Of a stretch of 64,000 nt of DNA, positions 94 to 59,077 are shown piece after piece; position 1 is the stretch's first letter, and every line of letters starts with the position of its first letter. The notes below the pieces were generated by a model that ran no database searches, had not been told where the DNA came from, and was given only the letters and a program-made list of their open reading frames with translations. The position numbers and the translations under genes are program-made. The stretch is taken from sequence record NC_019521.1; one strand, given 5' to 3'.

Positions 94-1182
94 ATGGCAC
101 AATTTAATTCAGCATCAATCGGTTTGTATCTTAAAGATTTCAGAAAAATCAATCGTACTAACCTGAATGACAAATTCAGTAATGATTCTAAATACAATGC
201 TTTATACAAAGCTTGGCAAAAAGCAGAAGATAATCTTTTAGCTAATCCTAAAAACGCTAATTTCATAAGTATTGAACTTAAACGTAGATCAGCTTTAGAG
301 GATTATATCAACGATACTTATTCGCAAAAAGAATTAGCTGCATTACCTTTAGCGAAAAACAAAGGTAATCGTAATCGTGAAATCGAAAACTGTTTAGGTC
401 TTGTTTATTCAATGGCTCTTTACTATGCGAAAAATTCAAAAGCTCGTGTTGGATTCGAGGATTTAATCGCATACGGAAATCTTGGATTGGTTGTAGCAGC
501 TGATAAATATTTCACAACTGAAGTTCCTTCAGAATCTATCTTACGTTTACGTTCTAAAGGATTTGCTAAATTCTCAACATACGCATACGCTTGGATTAAG
601 AAATATATCATCGAAGGTTCTCATGAAATGGGTGCTATCGTTGGAGGATCATCAAGAACAAAAGAGGAAGCTAACCGTAATGCTAAAATCATTACTCAGA
701 ACTACTCTTCGGATGAAGGTGATGATATGACTGATGTATGGGATTACGAAATGAATAAGAAATCTGTTAACGATTTCAAAGAATTGAAAATTGTTGAGGA
801 TGATGTTAACGAACTTAAACGTTATGTAAAAGTTGTTTTCGCACCTCTTACTAAATATGAGAAACGTATTTTATTCATGGCTTTAGGTATTGATACTCCT
901 AACGGTGTTGTTTACAAAATGAACGAAATTGCTAAAATCATGAACGTTTCTAAACCAACAATTTCTCGTGATATTGCTAGAGCTTACAACAAATTACGTA
1001 CTCAAGCTTCACAAAAATTACACGGTGAGGATGCTGTAACAATGGCTGCGTTAATCTTAGGTACTGACTTAACTGATGTTAACTTACCAGAATTACGTAT
1101 GGAATCTACTGAAGGATTTGAAAATGGTCCTAAAAATGTAAAAGGTTCCAACCTTATCAAAGCTTACCGTCAAGAATGGTAA
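94..1182 (+). CDS. Phage-encoded sigma70-family RNA polymerase sigma factor
   Basis: Region 2 motifs FEDLIAYGNLGLVVAADKY and KFSTYAYAWIKKYI; region 4 HTH MNEIAKIMNVSKPTISRDIARAYNKLR. Confidence 0.88.
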   Translation: MAQFNSASIGLYLKDFRKINRTNLNDKFSNDSKYNALYKAWQKAEDNLLANPKNANFISIELKRRSALEDYINDTYSQKELAALPLAKNKGNRNREIENCLGLVYSMALYYAKNSKARVGFEDLIAYGNLGLVVAADKYFTTEVPSESILRLRSKGFAKFSTYAYAWIKKYIIEGSHEMGAIVGGSSRTKEEANRNAKIITQNYSSDEGDDMTDVWDYEMNKKSVNDFKELKIVEDDVNELKRYVKVVFAPLTKYEKRILFMALGIDTPNGVVYKMNEIAKIMNVSKPTISRDIARAYNKLRTQASQKLHGEDAVTMAALILGTDLTDVNLPELRMESTEGFENGPKNVKGSNLIKAYRQEW

Positions 1183-1272: not shown

Positions 1273-1346
1273 TATCTTGTAGCTCAGCTGGTTAGAGCAA
1301 GTGACTGTTAATCACTAGGTCGATGGTTCGAATCCATCCAAGGTAG
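1273..1346 (+). tRNA. trnN: tRNA-Asn(GTT)
   Basis: Acceptor TATCTTG/CAAGGTA, anticodon arm AGTGA-ctGTTaa-TCACT, T-loop TTCGAAT; CCA not encoded. Confidence 0.95.
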
Positions 1347-1351
1347 CACAA

Positions 1352-1424
1352 AGGGATATAGCTCAGCTGGTAGAGCAATGGTCTCCAAAACCATCGGTCG
1401 GTAGTTCGAATCTATCTGTCCCTG
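1352..1424 (+). tRNA. trnW: tRNA-Trp(CCA)
   Basis: Acceptor AGGGATA/TGTCCCT, anticodon arm ATGGT-ctCCAaa-ACCAT, T-loop TTCGAAT. Confidence 0.95.
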
Positions 1425-1430
1425 CAATAT

Positions 1431-1507
1431 GCACATATGGCTGAGTCAGGTCAAAAGCAACGGTCTGCAAAACCGTACAACCATTGGTTCGAATCCAATT
1501 ATGTGCT
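1431..1507 (+). tRNA. trnC: tRNA-Cys(GCA)
   Basis: Acceptor GCACATA/TATGTGC, anticodon arm ACGGT-ctGCAaa-ACCGT, U73 discriminator. Confidence 0.93.
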
Positions 1508-1517
1508 CAAATAACAA

Positions 1518-1591
1518 TGCGGGGTAGAGCAGATGGAGTGCTCGCGGGTCTCATAAGCCCGAGGTCATGGGTTCGAGTCCCATCCCTGCTA
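1518..1591 (+). tRNA. Initiator-like tRNA-fMet(CAT)
   Basis: 1:72 mismatch (T:T), fMet-like 5' end TGCGGGG-TAGAGCAG, anticodon arm CGGGT-ctCATaa-GCCCG. Confidence 0.85.
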
Positions 1592-1597
1592 CTAATA

Positions 1598-1671
1598 GCT
1601 CCTTTAGCTCAGTTGGTCAGAGCAACAGACTCATAATCTGAAGGTCATAGGTTCAAGTCCTGTAGGGAGCA
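1598..1671 (+). tRNA. tRNA with CAT anticodon (Ile2/lysidine type or elongator Met)
   Basis: Acceptor GCTCCTT/AGGGAGC, anticodon arm aCAGA-ctCATaa-TCTGa, T-loop TTCAAGT. Confidence 0.88.
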
Positions 1672-1680
1672 CTTTTAAAA

Positions 1681-1753
1681 AGCTCTTCTAGCTCAATTGG
1701 TAGAGTGATAGATTCATTATCTATTGGATATGGGTTCGAATCCCATGAGAGCG
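1681..1753 (+). tRNA. Atypical CAT-anticodon tRNA (possible pseudo-tRNA)
   Basis: D-arm GCTC/GAGT, anticodon arm ATAGA-ttCATta-TCTAT (U at 37), T-arm ATGGG-TTCGAAT-CCCAT; irregular acceptor stem. Confidence 0.7.
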
Positions 1754-1760
1754 CAAATAC

Positions 1761-1902
1761 GAAACTGTAGCTCAGTTGGTAGAGTAGTAGATATATCTAC
1801 ATTCGAAAATATCTTGATTATGTATGGTTCTAGAACATACTAGAGAGACGATAGAATTCGGGTCATACCCGGTGGTCATTGGTTCGAATCCAATCAGTTT
1901 CA
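1761..1902 (+). ncRNA. 142-nt tRNA-like RNA with a 71-nt structured insertion after the D-arm
   Basis: Perfect acceptor GAAACTG/CAGTTTC, D-arm, T-arm ATTGG-TTCGAAT-CCAAT; insert 1787-1857; CGGG-tCATa-CCCG arm precedes the variable loop. Confidence 0.75.
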
Positions 1903-1947
1903 CTGTCGTAATGTAATTGAAACATGTGCCATATTCATGTATCGATT

Positions 1948-1993: not shown

Positions 1994-2002
1994 TATACAT
2001 AT
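1994..2002 (+). promoter_or_regulatory. Late-type promoter TATACATAT
   Basis: Recurrent motif upstream of virion genes; analogous to T4 late TATAAATA. Confidence 0.75.
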
Positions 2003-2026: not shown

Positions 2027-4333
2027 ATGATGATAGACCCTATCTTAGATAAGAAAATTGAAGAAACTTATCTAATGCATAATCACATTCTAAGAGCATG
2101 GGAAGAGGCTAAAGGTGAAACTGAATACGATCTTTATAAGGTTGCAATGTTCAAAGACCTTATAATTCTTACTAACCCTGCTGTTACATACGTAGAATCT
2201 CTAGCACAAATAGAAATATTCTTTCACCTGACAGCCATGCTAGAAGGCGGTTTGAAACCTGGACCTGATGTAACAGAAGATGCTACAGAATCCGAAAACG
2301 TAGATGTTTCTACTATCGACGGAATGGTTACAGATGACGGATTCCTTCAAATAGGAGAAGGTAACACAACCACTGATATATCTCTGACAACAAACAATGA
2401 GATAACATTAGGAATGGGTGTTCGTAAATACAGAAATAACGAAACTATTCCAGCTTCTAACGGTGTTTACAATTTACATTTAACTCCGGGTGAAAGATGG
2501 TCATTTGTTTACATGGCTAAACTTGAAGCGTTAGTTAATTCTGGTCTTACTGAGCTATATGATATTACTCTTCAAATCGAAAACGAAGGAAAAACTTTAG
2601 ATTTTGTATTCAAATCCATTAATACTGGAATCGTTCTAGTAAATGAAAAATATAATATAACCATTAGTGATGGATTTACTTCAGAGGACTTCAAAGTATT
2701 TCAGGATATACAAAGAGTTGAGTTCTATGGTAAAAAGTTCAATGACACAATGTCTAACGAAAATGGCGTACCTGTAGGAACATTCAAATTTACTTACAAA
2801 GCTGTAAGACGCTATCAGCATCCGGATTTCAATATCAATCCTGTAATTCTTGAAACTATCGCTAACGTTACATTTGATGAAGAACCTCCAAAAGAGGTTA
2901 GGGTTCATTTCATTGACACACCTTCAAAAATGCAAGTTAAACTAAATGGTAGTCCTGTTACAGAAAAGATCAATTTAGTAGGTGATGCTCCAATAGATGT
3001 TAACATAAAACTTGATTCAACAGATTACGGTGATAACCCAGTACAAGAAATAAAATCTGTTTCAGTAAAGAATAAAGATACTAATGAAGCTATTTCGTAT
3101 ACTGGTACTTTCGATGATCTGACAATAGCTCAAACTTCTATAGAAAATATCGAAGTAGGGTATGCAAAAAGTATAAAAACTGGAAATGTTAAAATAATCA
3201 AAGATGCTGGAGTATTACGTTCTTTATTGAATTCCAATAATTTCGATAATTATGAAATGACTAACGATTCAAACTATTCAGATACTTATGGTTCTGATGG
3301 TACTATAGCTATTACTACTAAAGATGGTTATAACATGAAATCTATCAAAGTAAATGACGTTGATGTAACAATTACTGATGTCGATTTCATGATAGTTCCA
3401 GTTAAATTCGTAAGTGACATTGTTACGGTCGTTACAGAATTAAATTCTGATTATCAAGTAATCATAACTTCGAATAATGAATCTGAATTAGTAACACCTG
3501 TTTCATATTACAATATATCAGATGATTGGTCGGAAGGTACTATGGAATTGAATACACCTAATTTATTTCCTGATACTACAGAACTTTCTGTAACCTTAGA
3601 ATTGAAAGATGATAGATCGTATATGTTTGGTTCTATAAAGTTAAATGACGTTGAGAAACTTACGGAACCTGAGACTTACTATACATTAGATTTCGCAATA
3701 GATAAATCAAACGTTAAGATCGAAACTTCTGTAGTCGATAATCCTAATAAAGGTAAGAATATAATATCGTTTAACTATAATGTGGGTAATATTCTAACTA
3801 AGATAGATGATGTTATAGTAACAGGGGCTAAATACTATGATCCTACTACTAATATCGTTTTAACAGTTTCTAATGTCATAAATGGTCAACCTGAAAGAGA
3901 AGTTAAGAAAATTAAAGTTATTTCTGGAACTGAAACAATAAGTGAACATGATCCAAACACTAACATTTCTTTGTTAATGGATAAAGATTATAGAATCGAA
4001 ACGGTTGAAGATTTCAAACAATATACGATAACACGTACTAACGATGATCCTAATGTTACTATAGACGTAAATGGATTCTATCCGATACCAAGTAATACTA
4101 CATTAGCACATAATGTACCTGTTTCGTTCAATGCTAATTCATCTGGAGGATTTACAGTAAAAGTTCCTATCGATACTCATATTGTTAAGTCTGTTACATT
4201 AAACGGAGTTCTTCAAACTATTGAAGAAAATGTACCAGTTGTTTCAATCCCTGCAAATACTTATACAGGAAATATAACTATCGAAGCTACTTCAGAATTA
4301 AAGCCTGAACCAGAACCTCCTGTCGAAGGATAA
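2027..4333 (+). CDS. Virion fibre/decoration protein with beta-rich (Ig-like) repeats
   Basis: 768 aa, T/V/N/I-rich beta repeats, late promoter; N-terminus resembles that of the next ORF. Confidence 0.55.
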   Translation: MMIDPILDKKIEETYLMHNHILRAWEEAKGETEYDLYKVAMFKDLIILTNPAVTYVESLAQIEIFFHLTAMLEGGLKPGPDVTEDATESENVDVSTIDGMVTDDGFLQIGEGNTTTDISLTTNNEITLGMGVRKYRNNETIPASNGVYNLHLTPGERWSFVYMAKLEALVNSGLTELYDITLQIENEGKTLDFVFKSINTGIVLVNEKYNITISDGFTSEDFKVFQDIQRVEFYGKKFNDTMSNENGVPVGTFKFTYKAVRRYQHPDFNINPVILETIANVTFDEEPPKEVRVHFIDTPSKMQVKLNGSPVTEKINLVGDAPIDVNIKLDSTDYGDNPVQEIKSVSVKNKDTNEAISYTGTFDDLTIAQTSIENIEVGYAKSIKTGNVKIIKDAGVLRSLLNSNNFDNYEMTNDSNYSDTYGSDGTIAITTKDGYNMKSIKVNDVDVTITDVDFMIVPVKFVSDIVTVVTELNSDYQVIITSNNESELVTPVSYYNISDDWSEGTMELNTPNLFPDTTELSVTLELKDDRSYMFGSIKLNDVEKLTEPETYYTLDFAIDKSNVKIETSVVDNPNKGKNIISFNYNVGNILTKIDDVIVTGAKYYDPTTNIVLTVSNVINGQPEREVKKIKVISGTETISEHDPNTNISLLMDKDYRIETVEDFKQYTITRTNDDPNVTIDVNGFYPIPSNTTLAHNVPVSFNANSSGGFTVKVPIDTHIVKSVTLNGVLQTIEENVPVVSIPANTYTGNITIEATSELKPEPEPPVEG

Positions 4334-4357
4334 TAAAATAGTAAATTGATACATATA

Positions 4358-4438: not shown

Positions 4439-6070
4439 ATGAAAATACCTGAAGATTTAAAAGAATATATCGATAAATCTTTCTTAAGAGCTAATCATTT
4501 ACATAGAAAGTATGAAGATTATCTTAAGTCTATAGACCCAGAAACTGGTAGAGGTTCTTTGACTTTGTATCAAGAATTTGAAGATTTATTGAGAAAAACT
4601 TTTCCTGATACGACAATACAGCATTATGTACAGAAATGGAAAATACTAAATTGGTTGAAGGAAGGAATAGGATACGAATTACATAATCCTGAAACTACTG
4701 GAACTTGGGAGTCTTATGAAAGGGGTTTTGATGAATTGAAATATTATGGTTTTAGTGAAGTCAATTATGAAGATTCTTATTTCGTTGACAAGGACTCGTA
4801 TAAGTCTAAGGGTATGTCAGAAGGTTTAATGAACAAAGAAATCGTTATGACTATTACCAATAACGTAATTATGAACGGTGAGGAAACACACATATATTCT
4901 TATAAAGATTTACCATTAGTGGAATTATCTAAAACCACGGGTGTGTCTGACTGGGTAATAGGTGGTACTATTTCGTTAACAGAAAAAATACGTGAACAGT
5001 TCAAAGAGTTCCAACCTGAATTAAGTATGCATAGCTTATACGAAACTAGACTTTTTATTAACATAGGTAACAAGTTCATAAATGTAGAATTTGTACGTAA
5101 TATGTCTACAGGTAAAGTTGAAGCTAGAGACGTTCAAACTAAAAAAGTATTACCTATACAAATAGGTACAACTTATGGACCTAATTACGTAATACAAAAT
5201 CCATCCAGTTACGAAAGTCAATTGTTAAATACTGTTTTCAATTTAACATATCGTTTCACAGGAACTGACGTTTCTAAAATGTTAGGATATACTGATAATA
5301 AACCTGCGAGAGGATTGATAAGATTAGGTTTACAGTCTGAAAGAAAATATAGAGACCCTGGAATCGATTATGATATTATAGGTAATTTATTACTAGATAT
5401 GATAGTTTATGACGATGAAGCTGATATACCAGAAAATAGGGAAACTAAAGTTATTATAGAACAAGATTTCTTGGACAGTGTAGAAGAGCTTTATATAAAC
5501 GGTGAAATTGCTACAAATGAACAAATCGTTACCAAAGATTTTATAATCGTTAATGCTAAAGGTGTTACTAAAGACAAGCTTCATTGCTTATCAGAATTTT
5601 CTTTAGTATATCCTGAAGATGGATTGACGATAAAAGAAAACAATCCAGTATTTAGTACTTACGAATTCGATTTCGAGAAAATCTTTTTACCTAGGAAGCT
5701 TGGTTCCGATATCAATGATGTAGTTATAGCATCTGGTAAATTTGATAAACGTGTTCAATGTATGTTTTATGAAAGTGCTGTATGGGGTGCAATGGAAAAC
5801 AATATAATAACAGTAAATGGTAATGTAGTAAAAGCTAGCTATCCGTATTATTACAATTATGGAGAACCTGTAAAGATAGTGATTCGAAAACAACCTGACT
5901 CGTATAGATGGAAATATACTTTGTTCATTTCAAAAAGATTCAAAGAACCAGGTGAAGATTATTATCTAGAAACTAGAGAAATTACGTTAGCTGATTTAGA
6001 TGAAAACAATGAATATGTAATAGACGATCAAGAAGGTCTTTACGATTATAGTTTTCAATTCACGTCATAA
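4439..6070 (+). CDS. Putative virion protein sharing an N-terminal module with 2027..4333
   Basis: 543 aa; similar first ~70 aa; structural-gene context. Confidence 0.5.
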   Translation: MKIPEDLKEYIDKSFLRANHLHRKYEDYLKSIDPETGRGSLTLYQEFEDLLRKTFPDTTIQHYVQKWKILNWLKEGIGYELHNPETTGTWESYERGFDELKYYGFSEVNYEDSYFVDKDSYKSKGMSEGLMNKEIVMTITNNVIMNGEETHIYSYKDLPLVELSKTTGVSDWVIGGTISLTEKIREQFKEFQPELSMHSLYETRLFINIGNKFINVEFVRNMSTGKVEARDVQTKKVLPIQIGTTYGPNYVIQNPSSYESQLLNTVFNLTYRFTGTDVSKMLGYTDNKPARGLIRLGLQSERKYRDPGIDYDIIGNLLLDMIVYDDEADIPENRETKVIIEQDFLDSVEELYINGEIATNEQIVTKDFIIVNAKGVTKDKLHCLSEFSLVYPEDGLTIKENNPVFSTYEFDFEKIFLPRKLGSDINDVVIASGKFDKRVQCMFYESAVWGAMENNIITVNGNVVKASYPYYYNYGEPVKIVIRKQPDSYRWKYTLFISKRFKEPGEDYYLETREITLADLDENNEYVIDDQEGLYDYSFQFTS

Positions 6071-6099: not shown

Positions 6100-6108
6100 T
6101 ATACATAT
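6100..6108 (+). promoter_or_regulatory. Late-type promoter TATACATAT
   Basis: Exact motif. Confidence 0.7.
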
Positions 6109-9777: not shown

Positions 9778-11508
9778 ATGCGTAAAACATACTTTAGTGA
9801 TAAGTTCAAATTTCTTAAAAATGCTTCATTAAGATCGGATGACATTTCAGCTTCAATCGATCAATATTTAGCTTCTGTATTTAAGAACAACAATTTAAAG
9901 TGGCTTAAAACTAAGTTGCTTGCTTTTAGTCAGACAATTGCGGTCGTAAAGGAATTATCGACATTGATATTCTATTACATTGATGCAGCCTTAACAGAAG
10001 CTAATGTTTTTACAGCTCAAAAGGAAGTTTCAGTTAGAAACTTAGCTGAGATTTCTGGACATAATGTTACTAGGGCTATTTCAGCACGTGGGTCTGTTCT
10101 TATAGAATTAATGCCACAGTTTTCAGCTGAATACGGTTCTCAAGTAAGAGTTAAGAAATATGGTAAGATTGCTACAAATCAAGGACATCAATATCTGATA
10201 AATTTTGATAGTGATGAACAAATACTTTCTACTAATTCGAATTGGATTTTACCAGTTATCGAAGGTAAACTTGAAACTTCTACATTCATAGCAACAGGTG
10301 AAGAACTACTTACCATTCATTTAGACGATATCAATATTATCGAGAATTATGATGTAAACGTTTTCGTTAATAATGTAAAATGGAACAAAGCTGCCGGTTT
10401 ATATGATATGACGATAAACGAAGAAGCTTATATCATAAAAACTGGTTATACGAATCAAGTGGATATTTATTTCGGTACTGGTATAAATGGTAAAGTTCCT
10501 TCTGTTGGTGATTCTATCCGTATCGAATATATCGTAACTTCTGGATTCGGTGGTAACATTTCAGATTTCGAAACTATCGAATTTACATTTGTTGACGGTG
10601 TATACGATTTACAGGATGAACAAATTGAAGTAAACGAATTAGTTAGAATTTCTAAACAGTCTGGATTCGATTTAGGAAACGCTGGTGAGGATTTAGATAC
10701 AACTAGATTAAACGTTGGTTTTAGTTCTCGTACTTTAGTTCTTTCAAGTTCTGAGAATTTCGAAGCTTATCTTTCAAGACTTCCAGTTTCCAGAGTAAAC
10801 GTTTGGTCTGAATATGATAACACAGCTGTTAAGAATCTTTTGATACTTCCAAGAATCAAAGAACGTGTAAGATCTTATAAGGATTATTTGACTATAGATG
10901 AAACTGATTTCGTTATAACAGATAAGATGAAAGATTCTATAATCGAACTTATAGATAATTCTAGAAAGACTTATGTAACGAATGAATTAGTTTTCATAGA
11001 CCCAATAATTCGTAAGTATGCTATTCTAGTTTATATCGAATCAGATCAAGATATTTTGAATCGTTCTTCTCTATACAAAGAAGTTACAGATACGATAACG
11101 TCACATTTCATGAATCGGATATTTTCTAAGAACTATTCGACAACAGTTTCTAAAGCTGAATTGATAAACGATATTAAGAAACAAGTTCCAGAATATTTAA
11201 GGATTAACATATTCATTGTTTCAGATCAAAACGAAGAGGCTAGAATAAACGGATTTTATGAGAAAAAAGAATATATTAACAAAGATGGTATTAAACGTAT
11301 AGATACTGTAAGAATCAATATCGACATTGATGAAAATCCAGGATTAGGTCTTTCGGAATATGGTGATATTTCTGTTCAGGATATAAACGAAATACCAGTT
11401 TTAGGAAAGAATGTTAGAATACTAAGCAACGATAATTCTGTTAAGACTATTGTCGATCCAATATCAGTTTACATAAAAGATGATAATAGCTGGAAACTTT
11501 TGTCTTAA
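9778..11508 (+). CDS. Baseplate wedge subunit, T4 gp6-like
   Basis: AQKEVSVRNLAEISGHNVTRAISARG, DIYFGTGINGKVPSVGDSIRIEYIVTSGFGGN, GEDLDTTR motifs. Confidence 0.85.
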   Translation: MRKTYFSDKFKFLKNASLRSDDISASIDQYLASVFKNNNLKWLKTKLLAFSQTIAVVKELSTLIFYYIDAALTEANVFTAQKEVSVRNLAEISGHNVTRAISARGSVLIELMPQFSAEYGSQVRVKKYGKIATNQGHQYLINFDSDEQILSTNSNWILPVIEGKLETSTFIATGEELLTIHLDDINIIENYDVNVFVNNVKWNKAAGLYDMTINEEAYIIKTGYTNQVDIYFGTGINGKVPSVGDSIRIEYIVTSGFGGNISDFETIEFTFVDGVYDLQDEQIEVNELVRISKQSGFDLGNAGEDLDTTRLNVGFSSRTLVLSSSENFEAYLSRLPVSRVNVWSEYDNTAVKNLLILPRIKERVRSYKDYLTIDETDFVITDKMKDSIIELIDNSRKTYVTNELVFIDPIIRKYAILVYIESDQDILNRSSLYKEVTDTITSHFMNRIFSKNYSTTVSKAELINDIKKQVPEYLRINIFIVSDQNEEARINGFYEKKEYINKDGIKRIDTVRINIDIDENPGLGLSEYGDISVQDINEIPVLGKNVRILSNDNSVKTIVDPISVYIKDDNSWKLLS

Positions 11509-12332: not shown

Positions 12333-15188
12333 ATGCTTAGAATCTACGATCAGAACAGTCAAGAACTGTATAACAATTCAATTCTTCATCTAAATAAAGT
12401 TTCAGTTGGGCTTAATGGAAATAGAACTATCGTTATCGAAAGTTCATCTAATTTTACTGTAACTAGTCCTAACGAAAACGTAAAGTTAGCTAAACTGATA
12501 AATCAGGACAAAGTATCATTAGAACTTTCTAGGGATTATAATGTTCAGAATAGATTTACCCCAGTTTATTTGAACTTATATTCTGAGGAAGAATTTGAAA
12601 GTATTGTAGACTTATACGTAACTAATATCGACGGTGATTCTATAACGATTAAAGTTAAAACAGTATTCGAGGATAACTCAGACCGTTTGATGGTTTTATT
12701 GAATAATAATGGTGTACGTATATCAGATTTATGGTATAAGGCTATCAAATCTTCAGACCTTAATGAAATATCTTGTATCGTTCTTAATCAAAAACGTAGA
12801 GAATTCTTACTAGATTTATTGACACTTACTGGTTGTATATCAAGTTACGATAATCTATTCGCAGCTTTAGACTTCTTTGAATGGAGTGATATAGTTACAG
12901 TAAAGGAGTATTGGAAAGATGGGCAATTTGGAAAGTATCGTATAACTGACGTTAACAATAAAATCATAGACCGAAAACTATTAAATGATGGTTTCGTTAA
13001 GACTAATTGGTTAGGATTGTATTTCCAGCTAAATCAACCAGATGGTACATATGATTCAGACGGTTTTGCTAATTTCGAAGACGTAAACGTAACAGTTGAA
13101 GACTTATGGACAAAGTTATACTATCTGAAACAGATTTTAGAAGAAACGTTTTTACCAACTAATGTTAAGATTATCGATATAGTAGGTGAACATACTTCAA
13201 TAGCTGGATTAGATAAAACTGTATGGGTTGATAAAACTGTAGTAACAGATATCGAACCAAATCCTTCAGATATCTTTGATGAATTCGATATCATAGCTAA
13301 TTCAAAGGATCATATAATTATCGAAGATTCATATTGTTTACGTAAGTTACCTATTTATATCGATCTTAATGATGATATGATAAAACTTGATCCTAATGCT
13401 ATATCTTCACAACCTAATGAACCGATATTCAAAATCATAAAGACTAAGGAAGAATTAAGTCAAATGACAGATTTCAAAGATTATGAAGTAATGACTCAGT
13501 TCTATCGTGGTGATTTCGCTTCAATAGAAGTTGTATTCAATGTTATCAATGAAGATTTAGCTGGATTGATGAATTACAAAATAGCTTTACAGGAAGATAT
13601 AGATGATTCTGGTCAATTCAATCAAATCTATTTGTCAGAATTAATGTCATATTCTGAACTATTAGCTTCACAAAAACTAGGTATTAGAAAGGTTGGTAAG
13701 TTTAGATTAGTGATTTATGTTTTCAATGGATGGGGTGCTATGGATATGGTAAGTTCGACATTAGAATTTACAGTATCTATAGATTCGTTAAACATTCAAC
13801 TTTATGAAATATCAGACAAGATTGATAAAGATTTGAAATATGATATTGGTTTCTATACAACTATTCCAACAGTAAATCAAGAACTTGTAGTACCGGATGC
13901 ATTCGATCCTATATTCGATATATCTGATAGAAGTACTGCGTTTCCTGGAAGATACTTCAAAAATTCAATGACTGAAAGATATCTAGAAACTACTATCAAT
14001 CAGTATAACATGGTTGAGAATCGACAATTACAAAAATGTAGGATTATCGATTATTCAACATATCATGAAGTTCTGTTATTTAGTTTTGATGATACTGAAA
14101 CTAGCTTGAAACTGAAGTTATACGATAGACATGAATGGTCTGAAGTTTCAAATCCTTCAAGTAATCATTCTGAAAGGACTGAATTAGTTTCAAAACTAAA
14201 TGATATAAGTTTCAGAAGTACGGATTGGAAGAATCCATTTAATCGATATACTTATCATCTTACAGAATATTCTGTTGACGGTAGTCTTACAAATACTATT
14301 CCAGTAATCGTAGCGTTTGCTAAAGAAGCTGATAATTTCTTTGAAAACATGGTGCTAATTGGAAACGCTTTATCAGAACCTATTGAGAAGGCTTATTTAC
14401 GATTACTATCATTACAACATGCTGTATTTAGAATCGATAAACTTATAAATCCTGCTACTAGTGATTTGACTATCATTCAAGATAAAGTAACTACAGTTAT
14501 CGAAAACGTAACTATCAATGATTTAGATGAATTGGTAACAGTTCTTAAGAATGCTCCGATTTCAAAAATGTCATTGACGGTTTCACCGAATGGAATGTTA
14601 ATCGTTTCAAGTGATAAGGATATTGTTTTGAAACATGATTCGATTGGTACCGTTTATGATATTGTCAGAAACGTAGCTTACGATAATTTGAAATTCGCAA
14701 AAATCGGTCAGGATTTTCAAGTAACAATTCCGGTATTTGCAACACCCGAAAAACGATATAATACTTATGATTATGTTTGGGAAGTTATCGATAGATATTC
14801 AGGTGATGTAGTACATACAGAGAATAACAGAGTAATGTCATGGTTACCTTTTGATTTGGGTGTATATGATATTAAATTATCAATGTTAGACGTTCTTACA
14901 GGTAATTCAGTTATATCAGCATTTAAGAAAGGTGGAATACGTATTTCTGATAGACCTTTTACTGAAACTAGTTCTAACGTAATGTTTTACAATACTGAAC
15001 AAACTAAGACTGTTTATAATACAACTTGCTTACTTGGAACGAATCCTGAACCTTTGATCTACAAAGTAAGGGAACGTAAGTATTCTTCTACAGTTTCACA
15101 AGAAGATGCTAATATGAAAGCTTTACGAGAAATCGAACAAAATGCTCAAGACTGGGCTAACGCTTATGGCTATTGTAGGGTGATGTAA
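12333..15188 (+). CDS. Large virion structural protein (probably baseplate)
   Basis: 951 aa, late promoter, near gp6-like; C-terminal YSSTVSQEDANMKALREIEQNAQDWANAYGYC module. Confidence 0.55.
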   Translation: MLRIYDQNSQELYNNSILHLNKVSVGLNGNRTIVIESSSNFTVTSPNENVKLAKLINQDKVSLELSRDYNVQNRFTPVYLNLYSEEEFESIVDLYVTNIDGDSITIKVKTVFEDNSDRLMVLLNNNGVRISDLWYKAIKSSDLNEISCIVLNQKRREFLLDLLTLTGCISSYDNLFAALDFFEWSDIVTVKEYWKDGQFGKYRITDVNNKIIDRKLLNDGFVKTNWLGLYFQLNQPDGTYDSDGFANFEDVNVTVEDLWTKLYYLKQILEETFLPTNVKIIDIVGEHTSIAGLDKTVWVDKTVVTDIEPNPSDIFDEFDIIANSKDHIIIEDSYCLRKLPIYIDLNDDMIKLDPNAISSQPNEPIFKIIKTKEELSQMTDFKDYEVMTQFYRGDFASIEVVFNVINEDLAGLMNYKIALQEDIDDSGQFNQIYLSELMSYSELLASQKLGIRKVGKFRLVIYVFNGWGAMDMVSSTLEFTVSIDSLNIQLYEISDKIDKDLKYDIGFYTTIPTVNQELVVPDAFDPIFDISDRSTAFPGRYFKNSMTERYLETTINQYNMVENRQLQKCRIIDYSTYHEVLLFSFDDTETSLKLKLYDRHEWSEVSNPSSNHSERTELVSKLNDISFRSTDWKNPFNRYTYHLTEYSVDGSLTNTIPVIVAFAKEADNFFENMVLIGNALSEPIEKAYLRLLSLQHAVFRIDKLINPATSDLTIIQDKVTTVIENVTINDLDELVTVLKNAPISKMSLTVSPNGMLIVSSDKDIVLKHDSIGTVYDIVRNVAYDNLKFAKIGQDFQVTIPVFATPEKRYNTYDYVWEVIDRYSGDVVHTENNRVMSWLPFDLGVYDIKLSMLDVLTGNSVISAFKKGGIRISDRPFTETSSNVMFYNTEQTKTVYNTTCLLGTNPEPLIYKVRERKYSSTVSQEDANMKALREIEQNAQDWANAYGYCRVM

Positions 15189-15212
15189 CACCCTACAAAT
15201 GTTTAGTATAAT
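15184..15212 (+). promoter_or_regulatory. Early-type promoter TGTAAC-N17-TATAAT
   Basis: Matches the class. Confidence 0.6.
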
Positions 15213-20798: not shown

Positions 20799-21047
20799 AT
20801 GATACATTTACCAAATGAAAGTTTCGATGAAACTGGATTATACTCATTACTTAAACGATTAGTTGAAAGTTTCAAAAGTTTAGAAGGTTGCGATGAGATA
20901 CCAGTATTGAAACTTAAAGTTAGTTTGTCTGAATCTGTTAAAGACTTAGCTAAAAACATAATTAGCTTCTATAATAACGATTTGAAAATAGTTAATAGAA
21001 CTAAAGAATACGTTGAATCTAATCTGAAACTGTTTTCATTCTATTAG
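20799..21047 (+). CDS. Hypothetical protein
   Basis: 82-aa ORF. Confidence 0.7.
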   Translation: MIHLPNESFDETGLYSLLKRLVESFKSLEGCDEIPVLKLKVSLSESVKDLAKNIISFYNNDLKIVNRTKEYVESNLKLFSFY

Positions 21048-21053
21048 TATAAT
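21025..21053 (+). promoter_or_regulatory. Early-type promoter TGAAAC-N17-TATAAT
   Basis: Exact consensus. Confidence 0.75.
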
Positions 21054-25469: not shown

Positions 25470-25511
25470 AAACCCATGTAACTGAAACTTACATGGGTTT
25501 CGTAGTATAAT
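25470..25511 (+). promoter_or_regulatory. Hairpin-embedded early promoter
   Basis: AAACCCATGTAA-cTGAAAC-TTACATGGGTTT-cgtag-TATAAT. Confidence 0.85.
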
Positions 25512-26302: not shown

Positions 26303-26345
26303 AAACCCTTGGAAACTGAAACTTTCAAGGGTTTCGTAGTATAAT
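26303..26345 (+). promoter_or_regulatory. Hairpin-embedded early promoter
   Basis: AAACCCTTGGAA-acTGAAAC-TTTCAAGGGTTT-cgtag-TATAAT. Confidence 0.85.
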
Positions 26346-30921: not shown

Positions 30922-30970
30922 GAAAGTTTCAGTTACGTAACTGAAACTTTCTTTCATTTCGTAGTACTAT
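30922..30970 (+). promoter_or_regulatory. Early promoter whose -35 lies in a perfect 30-bp palindrome
   Basis: GAAAGTTTCAGTTAC/GTAACTGAAACTTTC; TGAAAC-N17-TACTAT. Confidence 0.85.
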
Positions 30971-33350: not shown

Positions 33351-33680
33351 ATGATTAAGAAACAAATAACTTACGAAATTAAACAACATGGTAAGAACTT
33401 CTATAAAGTTAGATGTATCAAGTCTTTCAAGTTCTTTGGTAGTATTTTTCTTAAACTAAAGAATTATCTTTATACTGACGTAGATAGAAACGATCCCGAA
33501 TTTACTATTATCGATCGTAAGATTATCTTGTTCAATACTTATGTAGATGCTGAAAGATACATTTCTAAACTTCGTATAAAAACTGAAACTTCCGAATTCG
33601 AAAAAGAGAAATCTAAACTTGAAAGAGATTACGTTGTTTACGAACCAGCAACTGAAACTTTTCGAAGTCCTAAAGTATAA
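33351..33680 (+). CDS. Hypothetical protein, paralog 3 of 3
   Basis: FKFFGSIFLK...ILFNTYVDAERYI. Confidence 0.7.
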   Translation: MIKKQITYEIKQHGKNFYKVRCIKSFKFFGSIFLKLKNYLYTDVDRNDPEFTIIDRKIILFNTYVDAERYISKLRIKTETSEFEKEKSKLERDYVVYEPATETFRSPKV

Positions 33681-33681
33681 T
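33653..33681 (+). promoter_or_regulatory. Early-type promoter TGAAAC-N17-TATAAT
   Basis: Exact consensus within the upstream CDS end. Confidence 0.75.
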
Positions 33682-35764: not shown

Positions 35765-35810
35765 ACGAAACCCTCGGAAACTGAAACTTTCGAGGGTTTC
35801 GTAGTATAAT
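35765..35810 (+). promoter_or_regulatory. Hairpin-embedded early promoter
   Basis: ACGAAACCCTCGGAA-acTGAAAC-TTTCGAGGGTTTCGT-ag-TATAAT. Confidence 0.85.
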
Positions 35811-38936: not shown

Positions 38937-38965
38937 TGAAACTTTTGACATAATCGTAGTACTAT
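38937..38965 (+). promoter_or_regulatory. Early-type promoter TGAAAC-N17-TACTAT
   Basis: Matches the class. Confidence 0.75.
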
Positions 38966-39371: not shown

Positions 39372-39414
39372 AAAGCCTCAGAAACTGAAACTTCTGAGGC
39401 TTTTGTAGTATAAT
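39372..39414 (+). promoter_or_regulatory. Hairpin-embedded early promoter
   Basis: AAAGCCTCAGAA-acTGAAAC-TTCTGAGGCTTT-tgtag-TATAAT. Confidence 0.85.
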
Positions 39415-46514: not shown

Positions 46515-47051
46515 ATGAAATGGACCACTTTATCAATGTCAGACTTATGGGATTTTATCCATATGCATGATATAAGAACATCTGAATTCATCAAACCTAA
46601 GTTCCCTACTAGGAGATGGGGTCAGTCGTTTACAAAGACTTCTACAACTTGTAAACATTCTGTCGAAAGAATATCCAAACAATTAAACGAACTTAGATTT
46701 GATACGAAAATAGTATCAGACAAAGAAGCTAACGTTAAATTCAAGAATCTTGGAAAGTTCAAATCGATTCAGATATTGACAAAAGACTTGAGAACGTTCA
46801 AAAATAAAATACTTATGTTTAGATTACAGAAAGCTGCTAACGAAATCGCAAAACGTGGAATATCACCAAAAGTGTATGCTGATGCTATTAATTTACATAT
46901 TAATAACTTCGACATGGAGTCAGTAAACTTTCCAAATTACTCACCATTAAAGCAATTCGAATTTCCTAAAGCTATTCGAGTTTACGCTAAATTAGTACCA
47001 TCTGAAGATATTACGGTAAATCCTAACTATAAAAATGATGAAACTAACTAA
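46515..47051 (+). CDS. Hypothetical basic protein
   Basis: 178-aa ORF. Confidence 0.7.
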   Translation: MKWTTLSMSDLWDFIHMHDIRTSEFIKPKFPTRRWGQSFTKTSTTCKHSVERISKQLNELRFDTKIVSDKEANVKFKNLGKFKSIQILTKDLRTFKNKILMFRLQKAANEIAKRGISPKVYADAINLHINNFDMESVNFPNYSPLKQFEFPKAIRVYAKLVPSEDITVNPNYKNDETN

Positions 47052-48675: not shown

Positions 48676-48893
48676 TACATGTAAACTATACTTGTAATAC
48701 AACTGAAATCATTTATGACGATTACAAGATTATTCTTATGGATTTATATCCAAACGATAAAACTGATAAGTTGTATTCTTATGTAAGAATAGACGCTTAT
48801 AGAACACCAGAAACTAAGATTATCGATCAAATCGAATACGATAGATTAATAGAAGAATCTAGAAATCTATTTAAGAATAAAATGAAACGATAG
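48672..48893 (+). CDS. Hypothetical protein
   Basis: 73 aa, ATGA coupling. Confidence 0.65.
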   Translation: MIHVNYTCNTTEIIYDDYKIILMDLYPNDKTDKLYSYVRIDAYRTPETKIIDQIEYDRLIEESRNLFKNKMKR

Positions 48894-48911
48894 TAACTTC
48901 TTTAGTATAAT
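48883..48911 (+). promoter_or_regulatory. Early-type promoter TGAAAC-N17-TATAAT
   Basis: Exact consensus. Confidence 0.75.
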
Positions 48912-56872: not shown

Positions 56873-59077
56873 CTAAAACATATCCATTAAAGATTCAGCT
56901 GAGTCATCTATGTTACCCATACCATTCTTACGAATAGGTCTCCAAGTTTCATATTGATCGTTTTTAGGTTTTTCCAATCTTTCGTGTTCGATAGCGTAAT
57001 CCATGATTTCTTTCATTGGAGCATTATCCCTAATCCTATCTTCGATGTTCTTCTTAACTAATTCAGCTTCAGCTTTAACCATAGTTTCGTAAAGATTCTG
57101 TTTAGGAGTTTTAGGAGCGTCGAAATCGTATTCAGTAGGTTCTGCAACTTGTTGAGCTGATTGTAAAGCATGTTCCTTACTAAAGTAGAATATATCTTCT
57201 TGAGCATCATAAACGAAATTAGCTGGATCAACTAACGTTCCAACTGATTCTTGTTCAGCTTTAATCATTTCAGTAACCTTGATACTTATTCTTTCAAGAT
57301 ATTTCAAGTTTGGTTCGATAAGAGTTTCACTAAATCTACGATCCAATGAAGTATCTAAAAACTCATTAGCGAAATCTTTCCATTCTTGGAAGTCTTGTTC
57401 AAGATAATAAGAAAGGTTAACCATAGGCATAACCAAATCATCATGACCGGTTGTAGCTCTGTAACGACCTCTATCATCTTCACCAAATTCACGTATTTGA
57501 CTTATAGTAACTTCATCGGTTTCGATAAATGTCCTATCGTTAAGATACTTTTTGAAACGATTAACACCGATTCGTTTAGATGAAGCATTAACTCTTATAC
57601 CTTTTTCAGGTTTCGTAGCATCCTTCGATCTATAGAATTTAGCGAAAGTCTCAAATTCGATTTCTAAGTCTGGATAAATATCTTCAAGATACTCCATGTG
57701 AGTCATTAACTGATCACCATATTGATTTCGTTCGATAATCAATTTGACTTTCTCCTGATCCATTCTACTTACAAGTTTCATTATAACGTATGCGAAATCT
57801 TTAATATCGATAAGATTATCGTTAAAAACTCCAACATTAAGTAATGAAATATTATTCGATCTATTGTCTTGATCTATAACACCACCAAGTTTTGGCATCA
57901 TTTTATAGATTTTGATAGTACTGTAATCTTGACCAAGACCTTCAGAAACGTCTACAGATAAAACGAAATAATCTTGTGACAGATTGAAATCGAATAACTG
58001 AGTCCATTGGAAAGAATCATCAAAACCTGTTGCTAGATTATGATATCCTTTCCATTTGTAACCAACTTTCGATAAGTAGTTTATCGTATCCTGATTTAAT
58101 AGCTGTTTAACTTTAGCATCGAACGATAATGCATATTGTTGAGCAAAACCAGCATCACCTAAGTTAGCTTTCTCTTGAGCTACCCATTCCTCGTCACGTC
58201 CTGGAACTTCCCAGTAATCAACTCTAAACGGTACAAGTTTATTCTTTTTCTTTAAAGCACCGTCCCATAATTCCCAGTAATAATTCTTACCGTTTGGTGT
58301 TGAAGTCAGAAAGACTTTAGAATCTGGAATGGATGAAATAGTAGGATAAATGTTAATCCATACTTCGTAAGCGTTCTTAGCATATGCAACCTCATCCCAG
58401 AATATAACGTCTACAGTATAACCCTGAATACAGTCTGGACGTAAAGGTCTTGTAATAATCCTACAACCGTTATCGAATCCCATATCTTCAGCACCCCAAG
58501 ATGTTACTCCAGGTTTTAGGAAGAATGGAAGTGCACCGATAACACCTTTTACTTTACCGAAAATCTCTCCAGCGATTGTAGCACGTTGTGCAAGAATTGC
58601 TACAGTTTTATCAGTATGGAATAAACAGAACCAAACAATGTAAATTGCTGTAGTTGTTGTCTTACCAGTTTGACGTGCTTGTAGAACTATATTAAATCGT
58701 TCTTTTTGATATTGTGCAAGTAATTTCTTTTGATATGGTCTTAATTTGATTTTCGATACCTCTTTACCAGCTTTCAGATAAACATATTTCTCAGCGAAAT
58801 AGTTAATATCATCCATACATTTAAGTATCTCTTCAAGTTCTTCTTCAGTATACTGATAAACTAAGTTAGCGTTTCTAATACCTGGTTTACCACGATAAAA
58901 TGGTGAACCTCTGAAACCAACACCTTCATTTATACAGTTATATACGAAATCGATAGAACGGGATGACCATACAATCGAAGCATTCTCCTGTTCTTCCTTG
59001 GAATCGAAAGGAAGTCTAGGATCGAATGTCTTTATAGTTTCGATATGTTTAAGTTCGTTATTATTAGTATCTATCAT
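56873..59077 (-). CDS. Terminase large subunit (T4 gp17-like)
   Basis: QARQTGKTTT Walker A, IFWDE Walker B, STPNG coupling motif, DVSEGLGQDYS and HDDLVM nuclease motifs. Confidence 0.96.
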   Translation of the reverse strand: MIDTNNNELKHIETIKTFDPRLPFDSKEEQENASIVWSSRSIDFVYNCINEGVGFRGSPFYRGKPGIRNANLVYQYTEEELEEILKCMDDINYFAEKYVYLKAGKEVSKIKLRPYQKKLLAQYQKERFNIVLQARQTGKTTTTAIYIVWFCLFHTDKTVAILAQRATIAGEIFGKVKGVIGALPFFLKPGVTSWGAEDMGFDNGCRIITRPLRPDCIQGYTVDVIFWDEVAYAKNAYEVWINIYPTISSIPDSKVFLTSTPNGKNYYWELWDGALKKKNKLVPFRVDYWEVPGRDEEWVAQEKANLGDAGFAQQYALSFDAKVKQLLNQDTINYLSKVGYKWKGYHNLATGFDDSFQWTQLFDFNLSQDYFVLSVDVSEGLGQDYSTIKIYKMMPKLGGVIDQDNRSNNISLLNVGVFNDNLIDIKDFAYVIMKLVSRMDQEKVKLIIERNQYGDQLMTHMEYLEDIYPDLEIEFETFAKFYRSKDATKPEKGIRVNASSKRIGVNRFKKYLNDRTFIETDEVTISQIREFGEDDRGRYRATTGHDDLVMPMVNLSYYLEQDFQEWKDFANEFLDTSLDRRFSETLIEPNLKYLERISIKVTEMIKAEQESVGTLVDPANFVYDAQEDIFYFSKEHALQSAQQVAEPTEYDFDAPKTPKQNLYETMVKAEAELVKKNIEDRIRDNAPMKEIMDYAIEHERLEKPKNDQYETWRPIRKNGMGNIDDSAESLMDMF

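Follow-up and report, generated by a model that had tools for sequence, protein, structure and literature searches.

Bacteriophages without an RNA polymerase of their own are thought to depend on a host sigma factor for the transcription of their first genes. Phage sigma factors that redirect the host core RNA polymerase (RNAP) include gp28 and gp33/34 of SPO1 and gp36 of phiEco32, and those that have been studied act after an early phase driven by the host sigma. The gp55-type late sigma is a small protein (~150–190 aa) that consists of domain σ2 only and acts at a −10-only late promoter. In the programme of T4-type phages, the late sigma gp55 reads TATAAATA, and stem-loops termed PeSLs, which overlap early-type promoters and are repeated between genes, form terminator/early-promoter cassettes (PMC4122927). 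Group 2 jumbo phages, which lack an RNAP and have gp23-type capsids, encode a minimal sigma together with a fuller, RpoD-like one (Iyer et al. 2021, PMC7824862), and a 2026 review states that such phage sigmas “likely” act at phage-specific promoters (PMC13282480). Transcription machinery can also be delivered by the virion, as with the N4 virion RNAP (vRNAP), the virion RNAPs of phiKZ and AR9, a crAss-like virion RNAP, and T4 Alt (PMC4496689, PMC7598289). The stretch of DNA analyzed here, hereafter the window, covers the first 64 kb of the genome of Sphingomonas phage PAU (JQ362498 / NC_019521, 219,372 bp; the first 6 kb are 100% identical from position 1), and its gene 1 encodes a divergent sigma-70-family factor, gp1. 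Unlike the studied systems, PAU has two phage-specific promoter classes, no host-type promoters, and a sigma that is annotated as a capsid protein. A first-pass annotation had described a phage sigma and promoters foreign to an apparently Bacteroidota host, and had proposed that the phage supplies this sigma, possibly in the virion, to redirect host core RNAP. The observation was confirmed and the interpretation is partly supported.

gp1 (nucleotides 94..1182, + strand; 362 aa; YP_007006615.1 / AFF28006.1) contains sigma domain σ2 and a domain σ4 with a region 4.2 helix-turn-helix, the combination expected of the sigma-70 family. The NCBIfam model TIGR02937 matches residues 95–304 with 52.8 bits (cut-off 42.9) and PHROG 351, “RNA polymerase sigma factor”, matches with an E value of 9.4e-50; together with alignments to RpoD, these matches bear out the claim of a sigma factor with regions 2 and 4. 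The Pfam domains Sigma70_r2 and Sigma70_r4 score 22.4 and 17.1 bits (E 0.004 for the latter), both slightly under their gathering cut-offs. gp1 is not a primary sigma, because the RpoD/SigA equivalog models of NCBIfam fall far short of their cut-offs (21–39 bits vs 354–779; 37.7 vs 354 for TIGR02393). Region 1.1 is also absent and region 3 is reduced, features that set gp1 apart from group 1 (RpoD-type) factors. Nor does it resemble the T4 gp55-type minimal sigma, given its 362-aa length and its σ4 domain; a phmmer comparison of T4 gp55 with gp1 returns an E value of 8.9. Extracytoplasmic function (ECF, group 4) sigmas lack region 1.2, whereas gp1 has a region 1.2-like N-terminus and an RpoD-like region 2 (FSTYA..W), and the −10 element associated with it is TATAAT-like rather than CGT. 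The promoter of one ECF sigma, Bacillus subtilis σW, reads TGAAAC-N16-CGTA (PMC5829568); its −35 hexamer is identical to that of the PAU promoters described below, which combine it with a primary-sigma-type −10 and a spacer of 17.

The family to which gp1 belongs is very small. A search of 5.8 billion proteins yielded five relatives, and one of 1.84 billion representatives gave eight clusters at E <1e-30; the large protein databases give 5 to 12 relatives, on short contigs, and an IMG/VR search returned no relative above 32% identity besides PAU itself. Within this family, down to 27% identity, D123, G128, N129, G131, L132, K159, F160, S161, A164, Y165, and W167 are invariant, and the region 4.2 helix-turn-helix is conserved as well. 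The invariant positions coincide with the core-binding and −10 recognition motifs of sigma factors, which argues for retained sigma function. On these sequence grounds, gp1 is proposed to be a working phage sigma factor, predicted to bind core RNAP and to support initiation. It is also the only protein with a σ4 domain found when gp1 was compared by phmmer with a crude set of PAU open reading frames (ORFs).

To place the regions of gp1, an AlphaFold2 model was built on 54 sequences (mean predicted local distance difference test score, pLDDT, of 77.9). It most resembles the primary and group 2 sigmas of solved holoenzyme complexes, and a structural aligner superposes its residues 5 to ~320 on residues 94..612 of Escherichia coli sigma-70. 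Because this alignment begins at sigma-70 residue 94, the N-terminal 85 residues are, as modeled, region 1.2 and a short linker rather than an extension, with region 1.1 absent (region 1.2 and the following stretch, residues 5–85, nucleotides 106..348, + strand; in the comparison with 7xya_F, model residues 5..180 lie on sigma-70 96..451 with a root-mean-square deviation of 3.0 Å). The primary sigma of Bacteroidota (σA / σAB) would use the same host core as gp1 and has a different promoter code; like gp1 it is without region 1.1, as Vingadassalom and colleagues are said to have reported in 2005. Domain σ2 (regions 2.1–2.4; residues ~90–180, nucleotides 361..633) contains the core-binding sequence DLIAYGNLGL, the region 2.2 motif of which (DLI..GN.GL) is kept across the gp1 family, and the −10 recognition and melting sequence KFSTYAYAWIKKYIIE. 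Between DKY and KFSTY, at the junction of regions 2.2 and 2.3, lies a 14-residue insertion, TTEVPSESILRLRS (residues 141–154, nucleotides 514..555), which is kept in homologues of 62–63% identity and shorter in those of 37%. In the model, region 3 consists of a pair of short helices and a disordered, acidic segment with a pLDDT below 50 (residues 200–228, nucleotides 691..777), which stands in place of the region 3.2 linker. Residues 239–305 align to RpoD regions 4.1–4.2 and include the helix-turn-helix MNEIAKIMNVSKPTISRDIARAYNKLR (residues 276–302, nucleotides 919..999). Finally, ~40 residues at the C-terminus extend beyond the end of sigma-70 and are conserved in the family (residues 320–362, nucleotides 1051..1179). 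The insertion ahead of region 2.3 and the shortened region 3 that the first-pass annotation had described are thus both present; of the two terminal extensions that it proposed, only the C-terminal one holds.

The residues that would set promoter specificity differ from those of primary sigmas, as had been claimed. In HMMER alignments to solved RpoD chains, gp1 KFSTYAYAWIKKYIIE stands opposite KFSTYATWWIRQAITR. Group 1 factors have an invariant aromatic pair, W433/W434, and recognize −12 through Q437 and T440; the equivalent positions in gp1 are A166-W167, K170, and I173, again unlike a group 1 factor; in what we take to be the E. coli sigma-70 numbering, the changes are T432 to Y, W433 to A, Q437 to K, and T440 to I, with W434 kept. 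In region 4.2, gp1 VSKPTISRDIARAYNKLR aligns with RpoD VTRERIRQIEAKALRKLR, and the positions that contact the −35 element, presumably R584, E585, R588, and Q589 of sigma-70, are K, P, S, and R in gp1.

The promoters proposed in the first-pass annotation as early-like, TGAAAC-N17-TATAAT, stood up well, with a −10 element that proved broader than TATAAT. In the window, TGAAAC-N15-19-TATAAT occurs seven times against 0.41 expected, always on the + strand and always with a spacer of 17. Genome-wide there are 22 exact sites with this spacer, all on the + (coding) strand, and the whole PAU genome contains none at spacers 14–16 or 18–20 or on the − strand; sites with one mismatch at spacer 17 number 11, against a background of ~3. 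Inspection of intergenic regions without the motif brought out a second −10 variant, TACTAT, with the same −35 element and spacing. The split into intergenic and coding DNA is based on our own crude ORF calls (292 ORFs) rather than on the CDS table of the record. On the + strand, intergenic AGTAnnAT occurs 63 times, with a perfect TGAAAC 17 bp upstream in 34 cases and one with at most one mismatch in 47. Among these 47 sites, here called class A, the −10 is TATAAT in 28, TACTAT in 11, TAATAT in four, TAAAAT in three, and TAAGAT in one, while the AAC core of the −35 is invariant among the variants. The full pattern is aaCTGAAAC, 14 bases, and TAG-TA[T/C][A/T]AT, with a rigid 17-bp spacer and a median distance of 35 nt to the next ATG. 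This fixed two-box geometry fits a sigma that has both domain 2 and domain 4. Class A sites precede topoisomerase subunits, a ligase, a helicase, the single-stranded DNA-binding protein (SSB), MazG, many small ORFs, and the operon of gp112, a protein described below. PAU is packaged by a headful mechanism with terminal redundancy (Hua et al. 2017, PMC5646251), and upstream of gp1, on the far side of the record's arbitrary linear end, stand a class A promoter (219285) and a motif of a second class, class B (219331). A generic scan for TTGACA/TATAAT yielded 96 sites vs 106.6 ± 9.4 expected, and class A as an ordinary sigma-70 consensus was rejected on this lack of enrichment; the same scan reads class A as CTGAAA-N18-TATAAT, a match of 10 of 12 positions to the proteobacterial sigma-70 consensus.

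The Bacteroidota host call of the first-pass annotation was right. The host strain, HER1398, was recorded as Sphingomonas paucimobilis and reassigned from its genome to Sphingobacterium, phylum Bacteroidota (White and Suttle, PMC3738902), and the ~31% GC content of PAU, its leader signals, and the hosts of its closest phage relatives (Chryseobacterium and Tenacibaculum) agree with this reassignment. Despite the Sphingomonas label, the start signals of PAU follow the Bacteroidota pattern that lacks a Shine–Dalgarno sequence: GGAG or GAGG lies within 20 nt 5′ of the start codon in 1% of genes vs 3.2% of background, and the leaders are poor in G, rich in A at −11 to −13, and carry A at −3 in 63% of genes. 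The GenBank host field, taken at face value, would have caused the finding to be wrongly dismissed. Bacteroidota σA has the consensus TAnnTTTG at −12 to −5 (PMC9723704). In intergenic + strand DNA of PAU, TAnnTTTG occurs seven times vs 8.0 ± 2.6 expected, and never with a TTG or TTTG box at −33. Every promoter-like signal detected in PAU is therefore phage-specific, and the coding strand has no host-type promoters, in agreement with the earlier statement that these promoters are unlike the −33 TTTG/TAnnTTTG pair. When public sequencing runs were searched for PAU, the sole match was one wastewater DNA run (4% of sampled words), with no RNA-seq.

The class B motif, TATACATAT, occurs 11 times in the window vs 2.1 expected, and the whole genome has 36 copies on the + strand and a single one on the − strand. 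Its core, ATACATAT, lies at most 150 nt upstream of 49 gene starts, and no conserved −35 element was found upstream of the core across class B sites. In form, class B resembles a T4 late promoter. Of 15 genes annotated as structural or lysis genes, 14 have class B as their closest promoter on the upstream side, and class A sites are absent within 250 nt of all 15. The 23 genes for replication, nucleotide metabolism, and transcription are split, with class A closest upstream for 12 and class B for 11. The first-pass annotation had offered this motif as a template for gp1; its enrichment holds, whereas it forms a separate, −10-only late class that is more likely to belong to gp112. This 155-aa, unannotated protein, encoded outside the window (genome 89849..90316; L002:39849-40316), is a candidate for a gp55-like, minimal late sigma and was brought out by PHROG profiles (PHROG 234, “late sigma transcription factor”, E 1.1e-6), with a weak Pfam Sigma70_r2 match (E 0.0067) and a marginal BLASTP match to T4 gp55 (E 0.019). 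A phmmer search of the crude PAU ORF set with gp1 and T4 gp55 gave no significant second sigma, and the gp112 sequence had no match in the PDB. From these profile matches, gp112 is the more likely reader of class B. PAU is like T4 in several respects, namely a T4 gp23-type major capsid protein (PMC5646251), a −10-only late motif before structural genes, and a gp55-like candidate. It differs in that T4 has no full-length sigma, and in that T4 early promoters are host-like and read by host sigma-70, whereas class A is unlike host promoters. The pair of gp112 (the minimal candidate) and gp1 (the fuller sigma) also parallels the pair of sigmas in the group 2 jumbo phages.

Comparison with relatives may point to a link between each large sigma and its promoters. 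The sigmas on four contigs from four samples (L008, L009, L010, and L012) are 37–38% identical to gp1 and keep the 4.2 helix sequence PTISR; their promoters read aaaaTG(A/T)AAT-N17-TATAATtac, with a conserved copy ~115 nt upstream of the sigma gene. The sigma of Chryseobacterium phage MA9V-1 is ~25% identical to gp1, keeps KFSAYAYHWIKK in regions 2.3/2.4, and differs in the 4.2 helix. At the early-type sites of this phage, the −10 remains TATAAT or TATTAT and the upstream element is a different one, TTTCATATGTCAAA, which is also found before the sigma gene. The repeated early-type element of MA9V-1, aTTTTCAtATGTCAAAt and then TAT(a/t)cTATAAT or TATTAT, stands at five intergenic positions within 40 kb (L033:7728, 18986, 19869, 35516, and 35902), one of them ahead of the phage's own sigma gene. 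Thus, in these sequences, the −10 appears constant where region 2.4 is constant and the −35 appears to change with region 4.2, as would be expected if these sigmas read these promoters. The late-type motif of MA9V-1, ATA[C/T]ATAA, is close to class B. A further relative, L011, keeps the gene order of sigma, tRNA, gp9-like, and gp10-like, and has a class B-type motif 32 nt upstream of the sigma ATG.

The suggestion that gp1 is possibly in the virion has outside support from the depositors, as a database note only. For gp1, GenBank JQ362498 has “internal capsid vertex protein (mango) subunit 2” as a note and no sigma annotation, and RefSeq NC_019521 names the product “RNA polymerase sigma factor”; a literature search did not find the two annotations discussed together. 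Hua et al. 2017 reported structures on the inner side of the vertices in empty PAU capsids and left them for a future manuscript (PMC5646251); the literature search found no follow-up paper on them. As for late expression, the gp1 ATG is preceded at 127 nt by a class B motif, which is evidence of a motif and not of expression. An N-terminal MKxLxxLYEA(KLNEA) motif, accompanied by LxE cleavage sites of the T4 kind, recurs in four annotated internal capsid proteins (gp142, gp154, gp199, and gp270) and in the scaffold gp152, and from sequence this looks like a T4-like capsid-targeting and prohead-protease system; the genes of these five proteins lie outside the window (L003:6051-6512, 13313-13735; L003:46167-46715; L005:549-1592; L003:12151-12984). 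This capsid-targeting-like motif is absent from the N-termini of gp1 and its annotated partner gp10, and a T4-like capsid-targeting motif in gp1 was rejected on that ground; if gp1 is packaged, it would therefore enter by another route. The annotated internal capsid protein gp70 (46515..47051) is likewise without the motif, and the PAU major capsid protein has ALME near its reported cleavage point at about residue 65.

On balance, we lean toward a reading in which gp1 binds host core RNAP and reads class A, gp112 reads class B, and virion gp1 may start transcription. With the Sphingobacterium core RNAP, gp1 would act at ~47 class A promoters before early and middle-type genes, those of gp1 itself and of the gp112 operon included, and gp112 with the polymerase would act at ~49 class B promoters (tTATACATATt) before head, tail, and lysis genes, like the T4 late programme. 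gp1 would then be made early through class A, in a self-amplifying manner, and late through class B for packaging. Since the coding strand has no host-type promoters and gp1 has a capsid annotation, virion-borne gp1 may serve the first round of transcription. The logic would be that of N4 vRNAP and the other virion-delivered machines, in which a head-packaged protein accompanies the DNA into the cell and early genes need no host promoter recognition; the cargo in those systems is a whole polymerase or an RNAP-modifying enzyme, whereas in PAU it would be a sigma subunit whose ejection is hypothetical. We infer the reading of class A by gp1, the reading of class B by gp112, and the ejection of gp1 into the cell. 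The strongest form of the proposal, in which PAU ejects the capsid-vertex gp1 with its DNA and host core RNAP transcribes without any host sigma, is put forward tentatively and seems to us rather doubtful.

Several observations weigh against this reading. The covariation argument draws on few relatives, short contigs, and few data points. In the alignment, gp1 has Ala at the equivalent of W433, the wedge residue of primary sigmas, and its Pfam domain scores are sub-threshold. The assignment of gp112 depends on weak profile matches. The host code was extrapolated from Flavobacterium and Bacteroides and may not be that of Sphingobacterium σA, some host sigma might tolerate the class A match to the proteobacterial consensus, and PAU DNA contains modified cytosine (PMC5646251), which might bear on promoter recognition. 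The capsid location of gp1 comes from a database note, the targeting motif of other internal capsid proteins is missing from it, and a vertex-anchored protein need not be ejected.

The alternative that survives best is that class A is read by host σA, either unaided or helped by a small phage co-factor, in the manner of T4 early transcription, and that gp1 serves minor or different promoters. Although class A matches TTGACA-N18-TATAAT at 10 of 12 positions and the well-studied sigma-encoding phages (T4, SPO1, and phiEco32) are generally known to express their early genes via the host sigma, this explanation is unlikely: class A has neither the −7 TAnnTTTG nor the −33 TTTG box of Bacteroidota, no other orphan two-box motif was found in PAU for gp1 to read, and the −35 element changes with the 4.2 helix of the phage sigma in MA9V-1 though both hosts are Bacteroidota. 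It is also quite improbable that gp1 is an exapted capsid-interior protein without sigma activity or, in a variant, a capsid “sigma sink” that ends class A transcription with no delivery. The depositors' note names a structural role only, gp1 is annotated in complex with an orphan protein, gp10, and the Ala in place of W433 and the sub-threshold Pfam scores would suit a lost activity; yet the family conserves core binding, −10 recognition, and the 4.2 helix-turn-helix, which is unexpected for a purely structural role, and the sink variant still requires an active gp1 sigma earlier in infection. Very improbable is a late sigma role for gp1 at TATACATAT, with gp112 accessory or unrelated, for although its gene adjoins the late structural genes gp9 and gp10, late motifs precede it in PAU and the sigma gene in L011, and a virion protein has to be plentiful in late infection, class B has no conserved −35 for the intact and conserved region 4 helix-turn-helix of gp1, gp112 is available as a gp55-like candidate, and the late motif is nearly identical in MA9V-1 while the large sigmas are only 25% identical.

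Within the window, exact class A sites on the + strand are found at 21025..21053, 33 nt upstream of the gp31 ATG, and at 33653..33681, at the 3′ end of gp49 and upstream of gp50, and a site without a hairpin lies at 48883..48911 upstream of gp74. Sites with the TACTAT −10 are located at 30942..30970 upstream of gp45 (a topoisomerase subunit) and at 38937..38965 upstream of gp64. A strong hairpin accompanies the sites at 25483..25511 upstream of gp39 (−14.5 kcal/mol, with the −35 hexamer in the loop), 26317..26345 upstream of gp41 (DNA topoisomerase II), 35782..35810 upstream of gp57 (−21.6 kcal/mol), and 39386..39414 upstream of gp65. The site at 15184..15212 upstream of gp22 has one mismatch (TGTAAC) and a hairpin with an unrelated stem; further one-mismatch sites start at 11492, 16149, 47217, and 56239. 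In total, 17 of 33 class A sites (at most one mismatch) have a hairpin that holds the −35 hexamer in its loop, with energies of −14 to −22 kcal/mol (z ≤ −4.7), and there are at least 10 distinct stem sequences. These stem-loops overlap an early-type promoter and recur between PAU genes, and they look like PeSL-type (bidirectional) terminator/promoter cassettes of T4-type phages; the position of the −35 hexamer within the hairpin loop differs from T4. The hairpins have A and T runs on both sides (25470..25500, 26304..26335, 35768..35800, and 39372..39403 in the window, and others genome-wide). A hairpin recognized as such, as by N4 vRNAP, was rejected as the main account of class A, since a strong hairpin is missing at 16 of the 33 sites.

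The class B motif TATACATAT is present on the + strand of the window at 1994..2002, ahead of gp9, and at 6100, 7084, 9746, 12308, 25058, 30062, 40721, 56747, 60855, and 61653, and the ATACATAT core is also found at 4349, 28362, 42263, and 59114. Class A and class B motifs stand in tandem before the SSB gene gp173 (126168/126208), gp188 (140325/140360), gp267 (197215/197245), and gp1 (219285/219331), and they are also near each other in the 25058/25483 region of the window. This tandem arrangement suggests gene expression in both phases of infection.

Directly 3′ of gp1 are seven tRNA genes (1273..1903, + strand) for Asn, Trp, Cys, three with a CAT anticodon, and Ser with an insertion. This cluster has no promoter motif of its own and is therefore probably co-transcribed with gp1. 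The three CAT-anticodon genes are consecutive (1518..1754) and may be the initiator, the elongator, and a lysidine-dependent Ile tRNA. An insertion of ~55 nt lies in the tRNA-Ser gene (1761..1903), which matches the tRNA model of Rfam with 45 bits across 142 nt, goes uncalled by ARAGORN, and is joined from two pieces in the record. Next come gp9 (2027..4333, + strand), annotated as “capsid decoration protein (banana)”, and gp10 (4439..6070, + strand), annotated as “internal capsid vertex protein (mango) subunit 1” and without a family match. A shared N-terminal domain in gp9 and gp10 was rejected, as their similarity is insignificant (E 0.27). The terminase large subunit (56873..59077, − strand) is the sole annotated minus-strand gene in the window, and GC and AT skew dip there.

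Phage sigma factors are known and gp1 was already annotated as one; what stands out in PAU is the apparent lack of host-type promoters together with a capsid-annotated sigma, in a host phylum that has a promoter code of its own. Should host σA prove to read class A, the finding would shrink to an ordinary, already annotated phage sigma. If the proposal is true, a virion-ejected gp1 would be the first virion-delivered sigma subunit, a third route beside transcription that begins with the host sigma or with a whole delivered polymerase. It would also give a function to the unexplained densities under the vertices of the PAU capsid, and gp1 with class A would provide an orthogonal sigma/promoter pair for Bacteroidota genetics. 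Finally, it would explain how a T4-like lineage can work in Bacteroidota, whose promoter code is unlike that of most bacteria.

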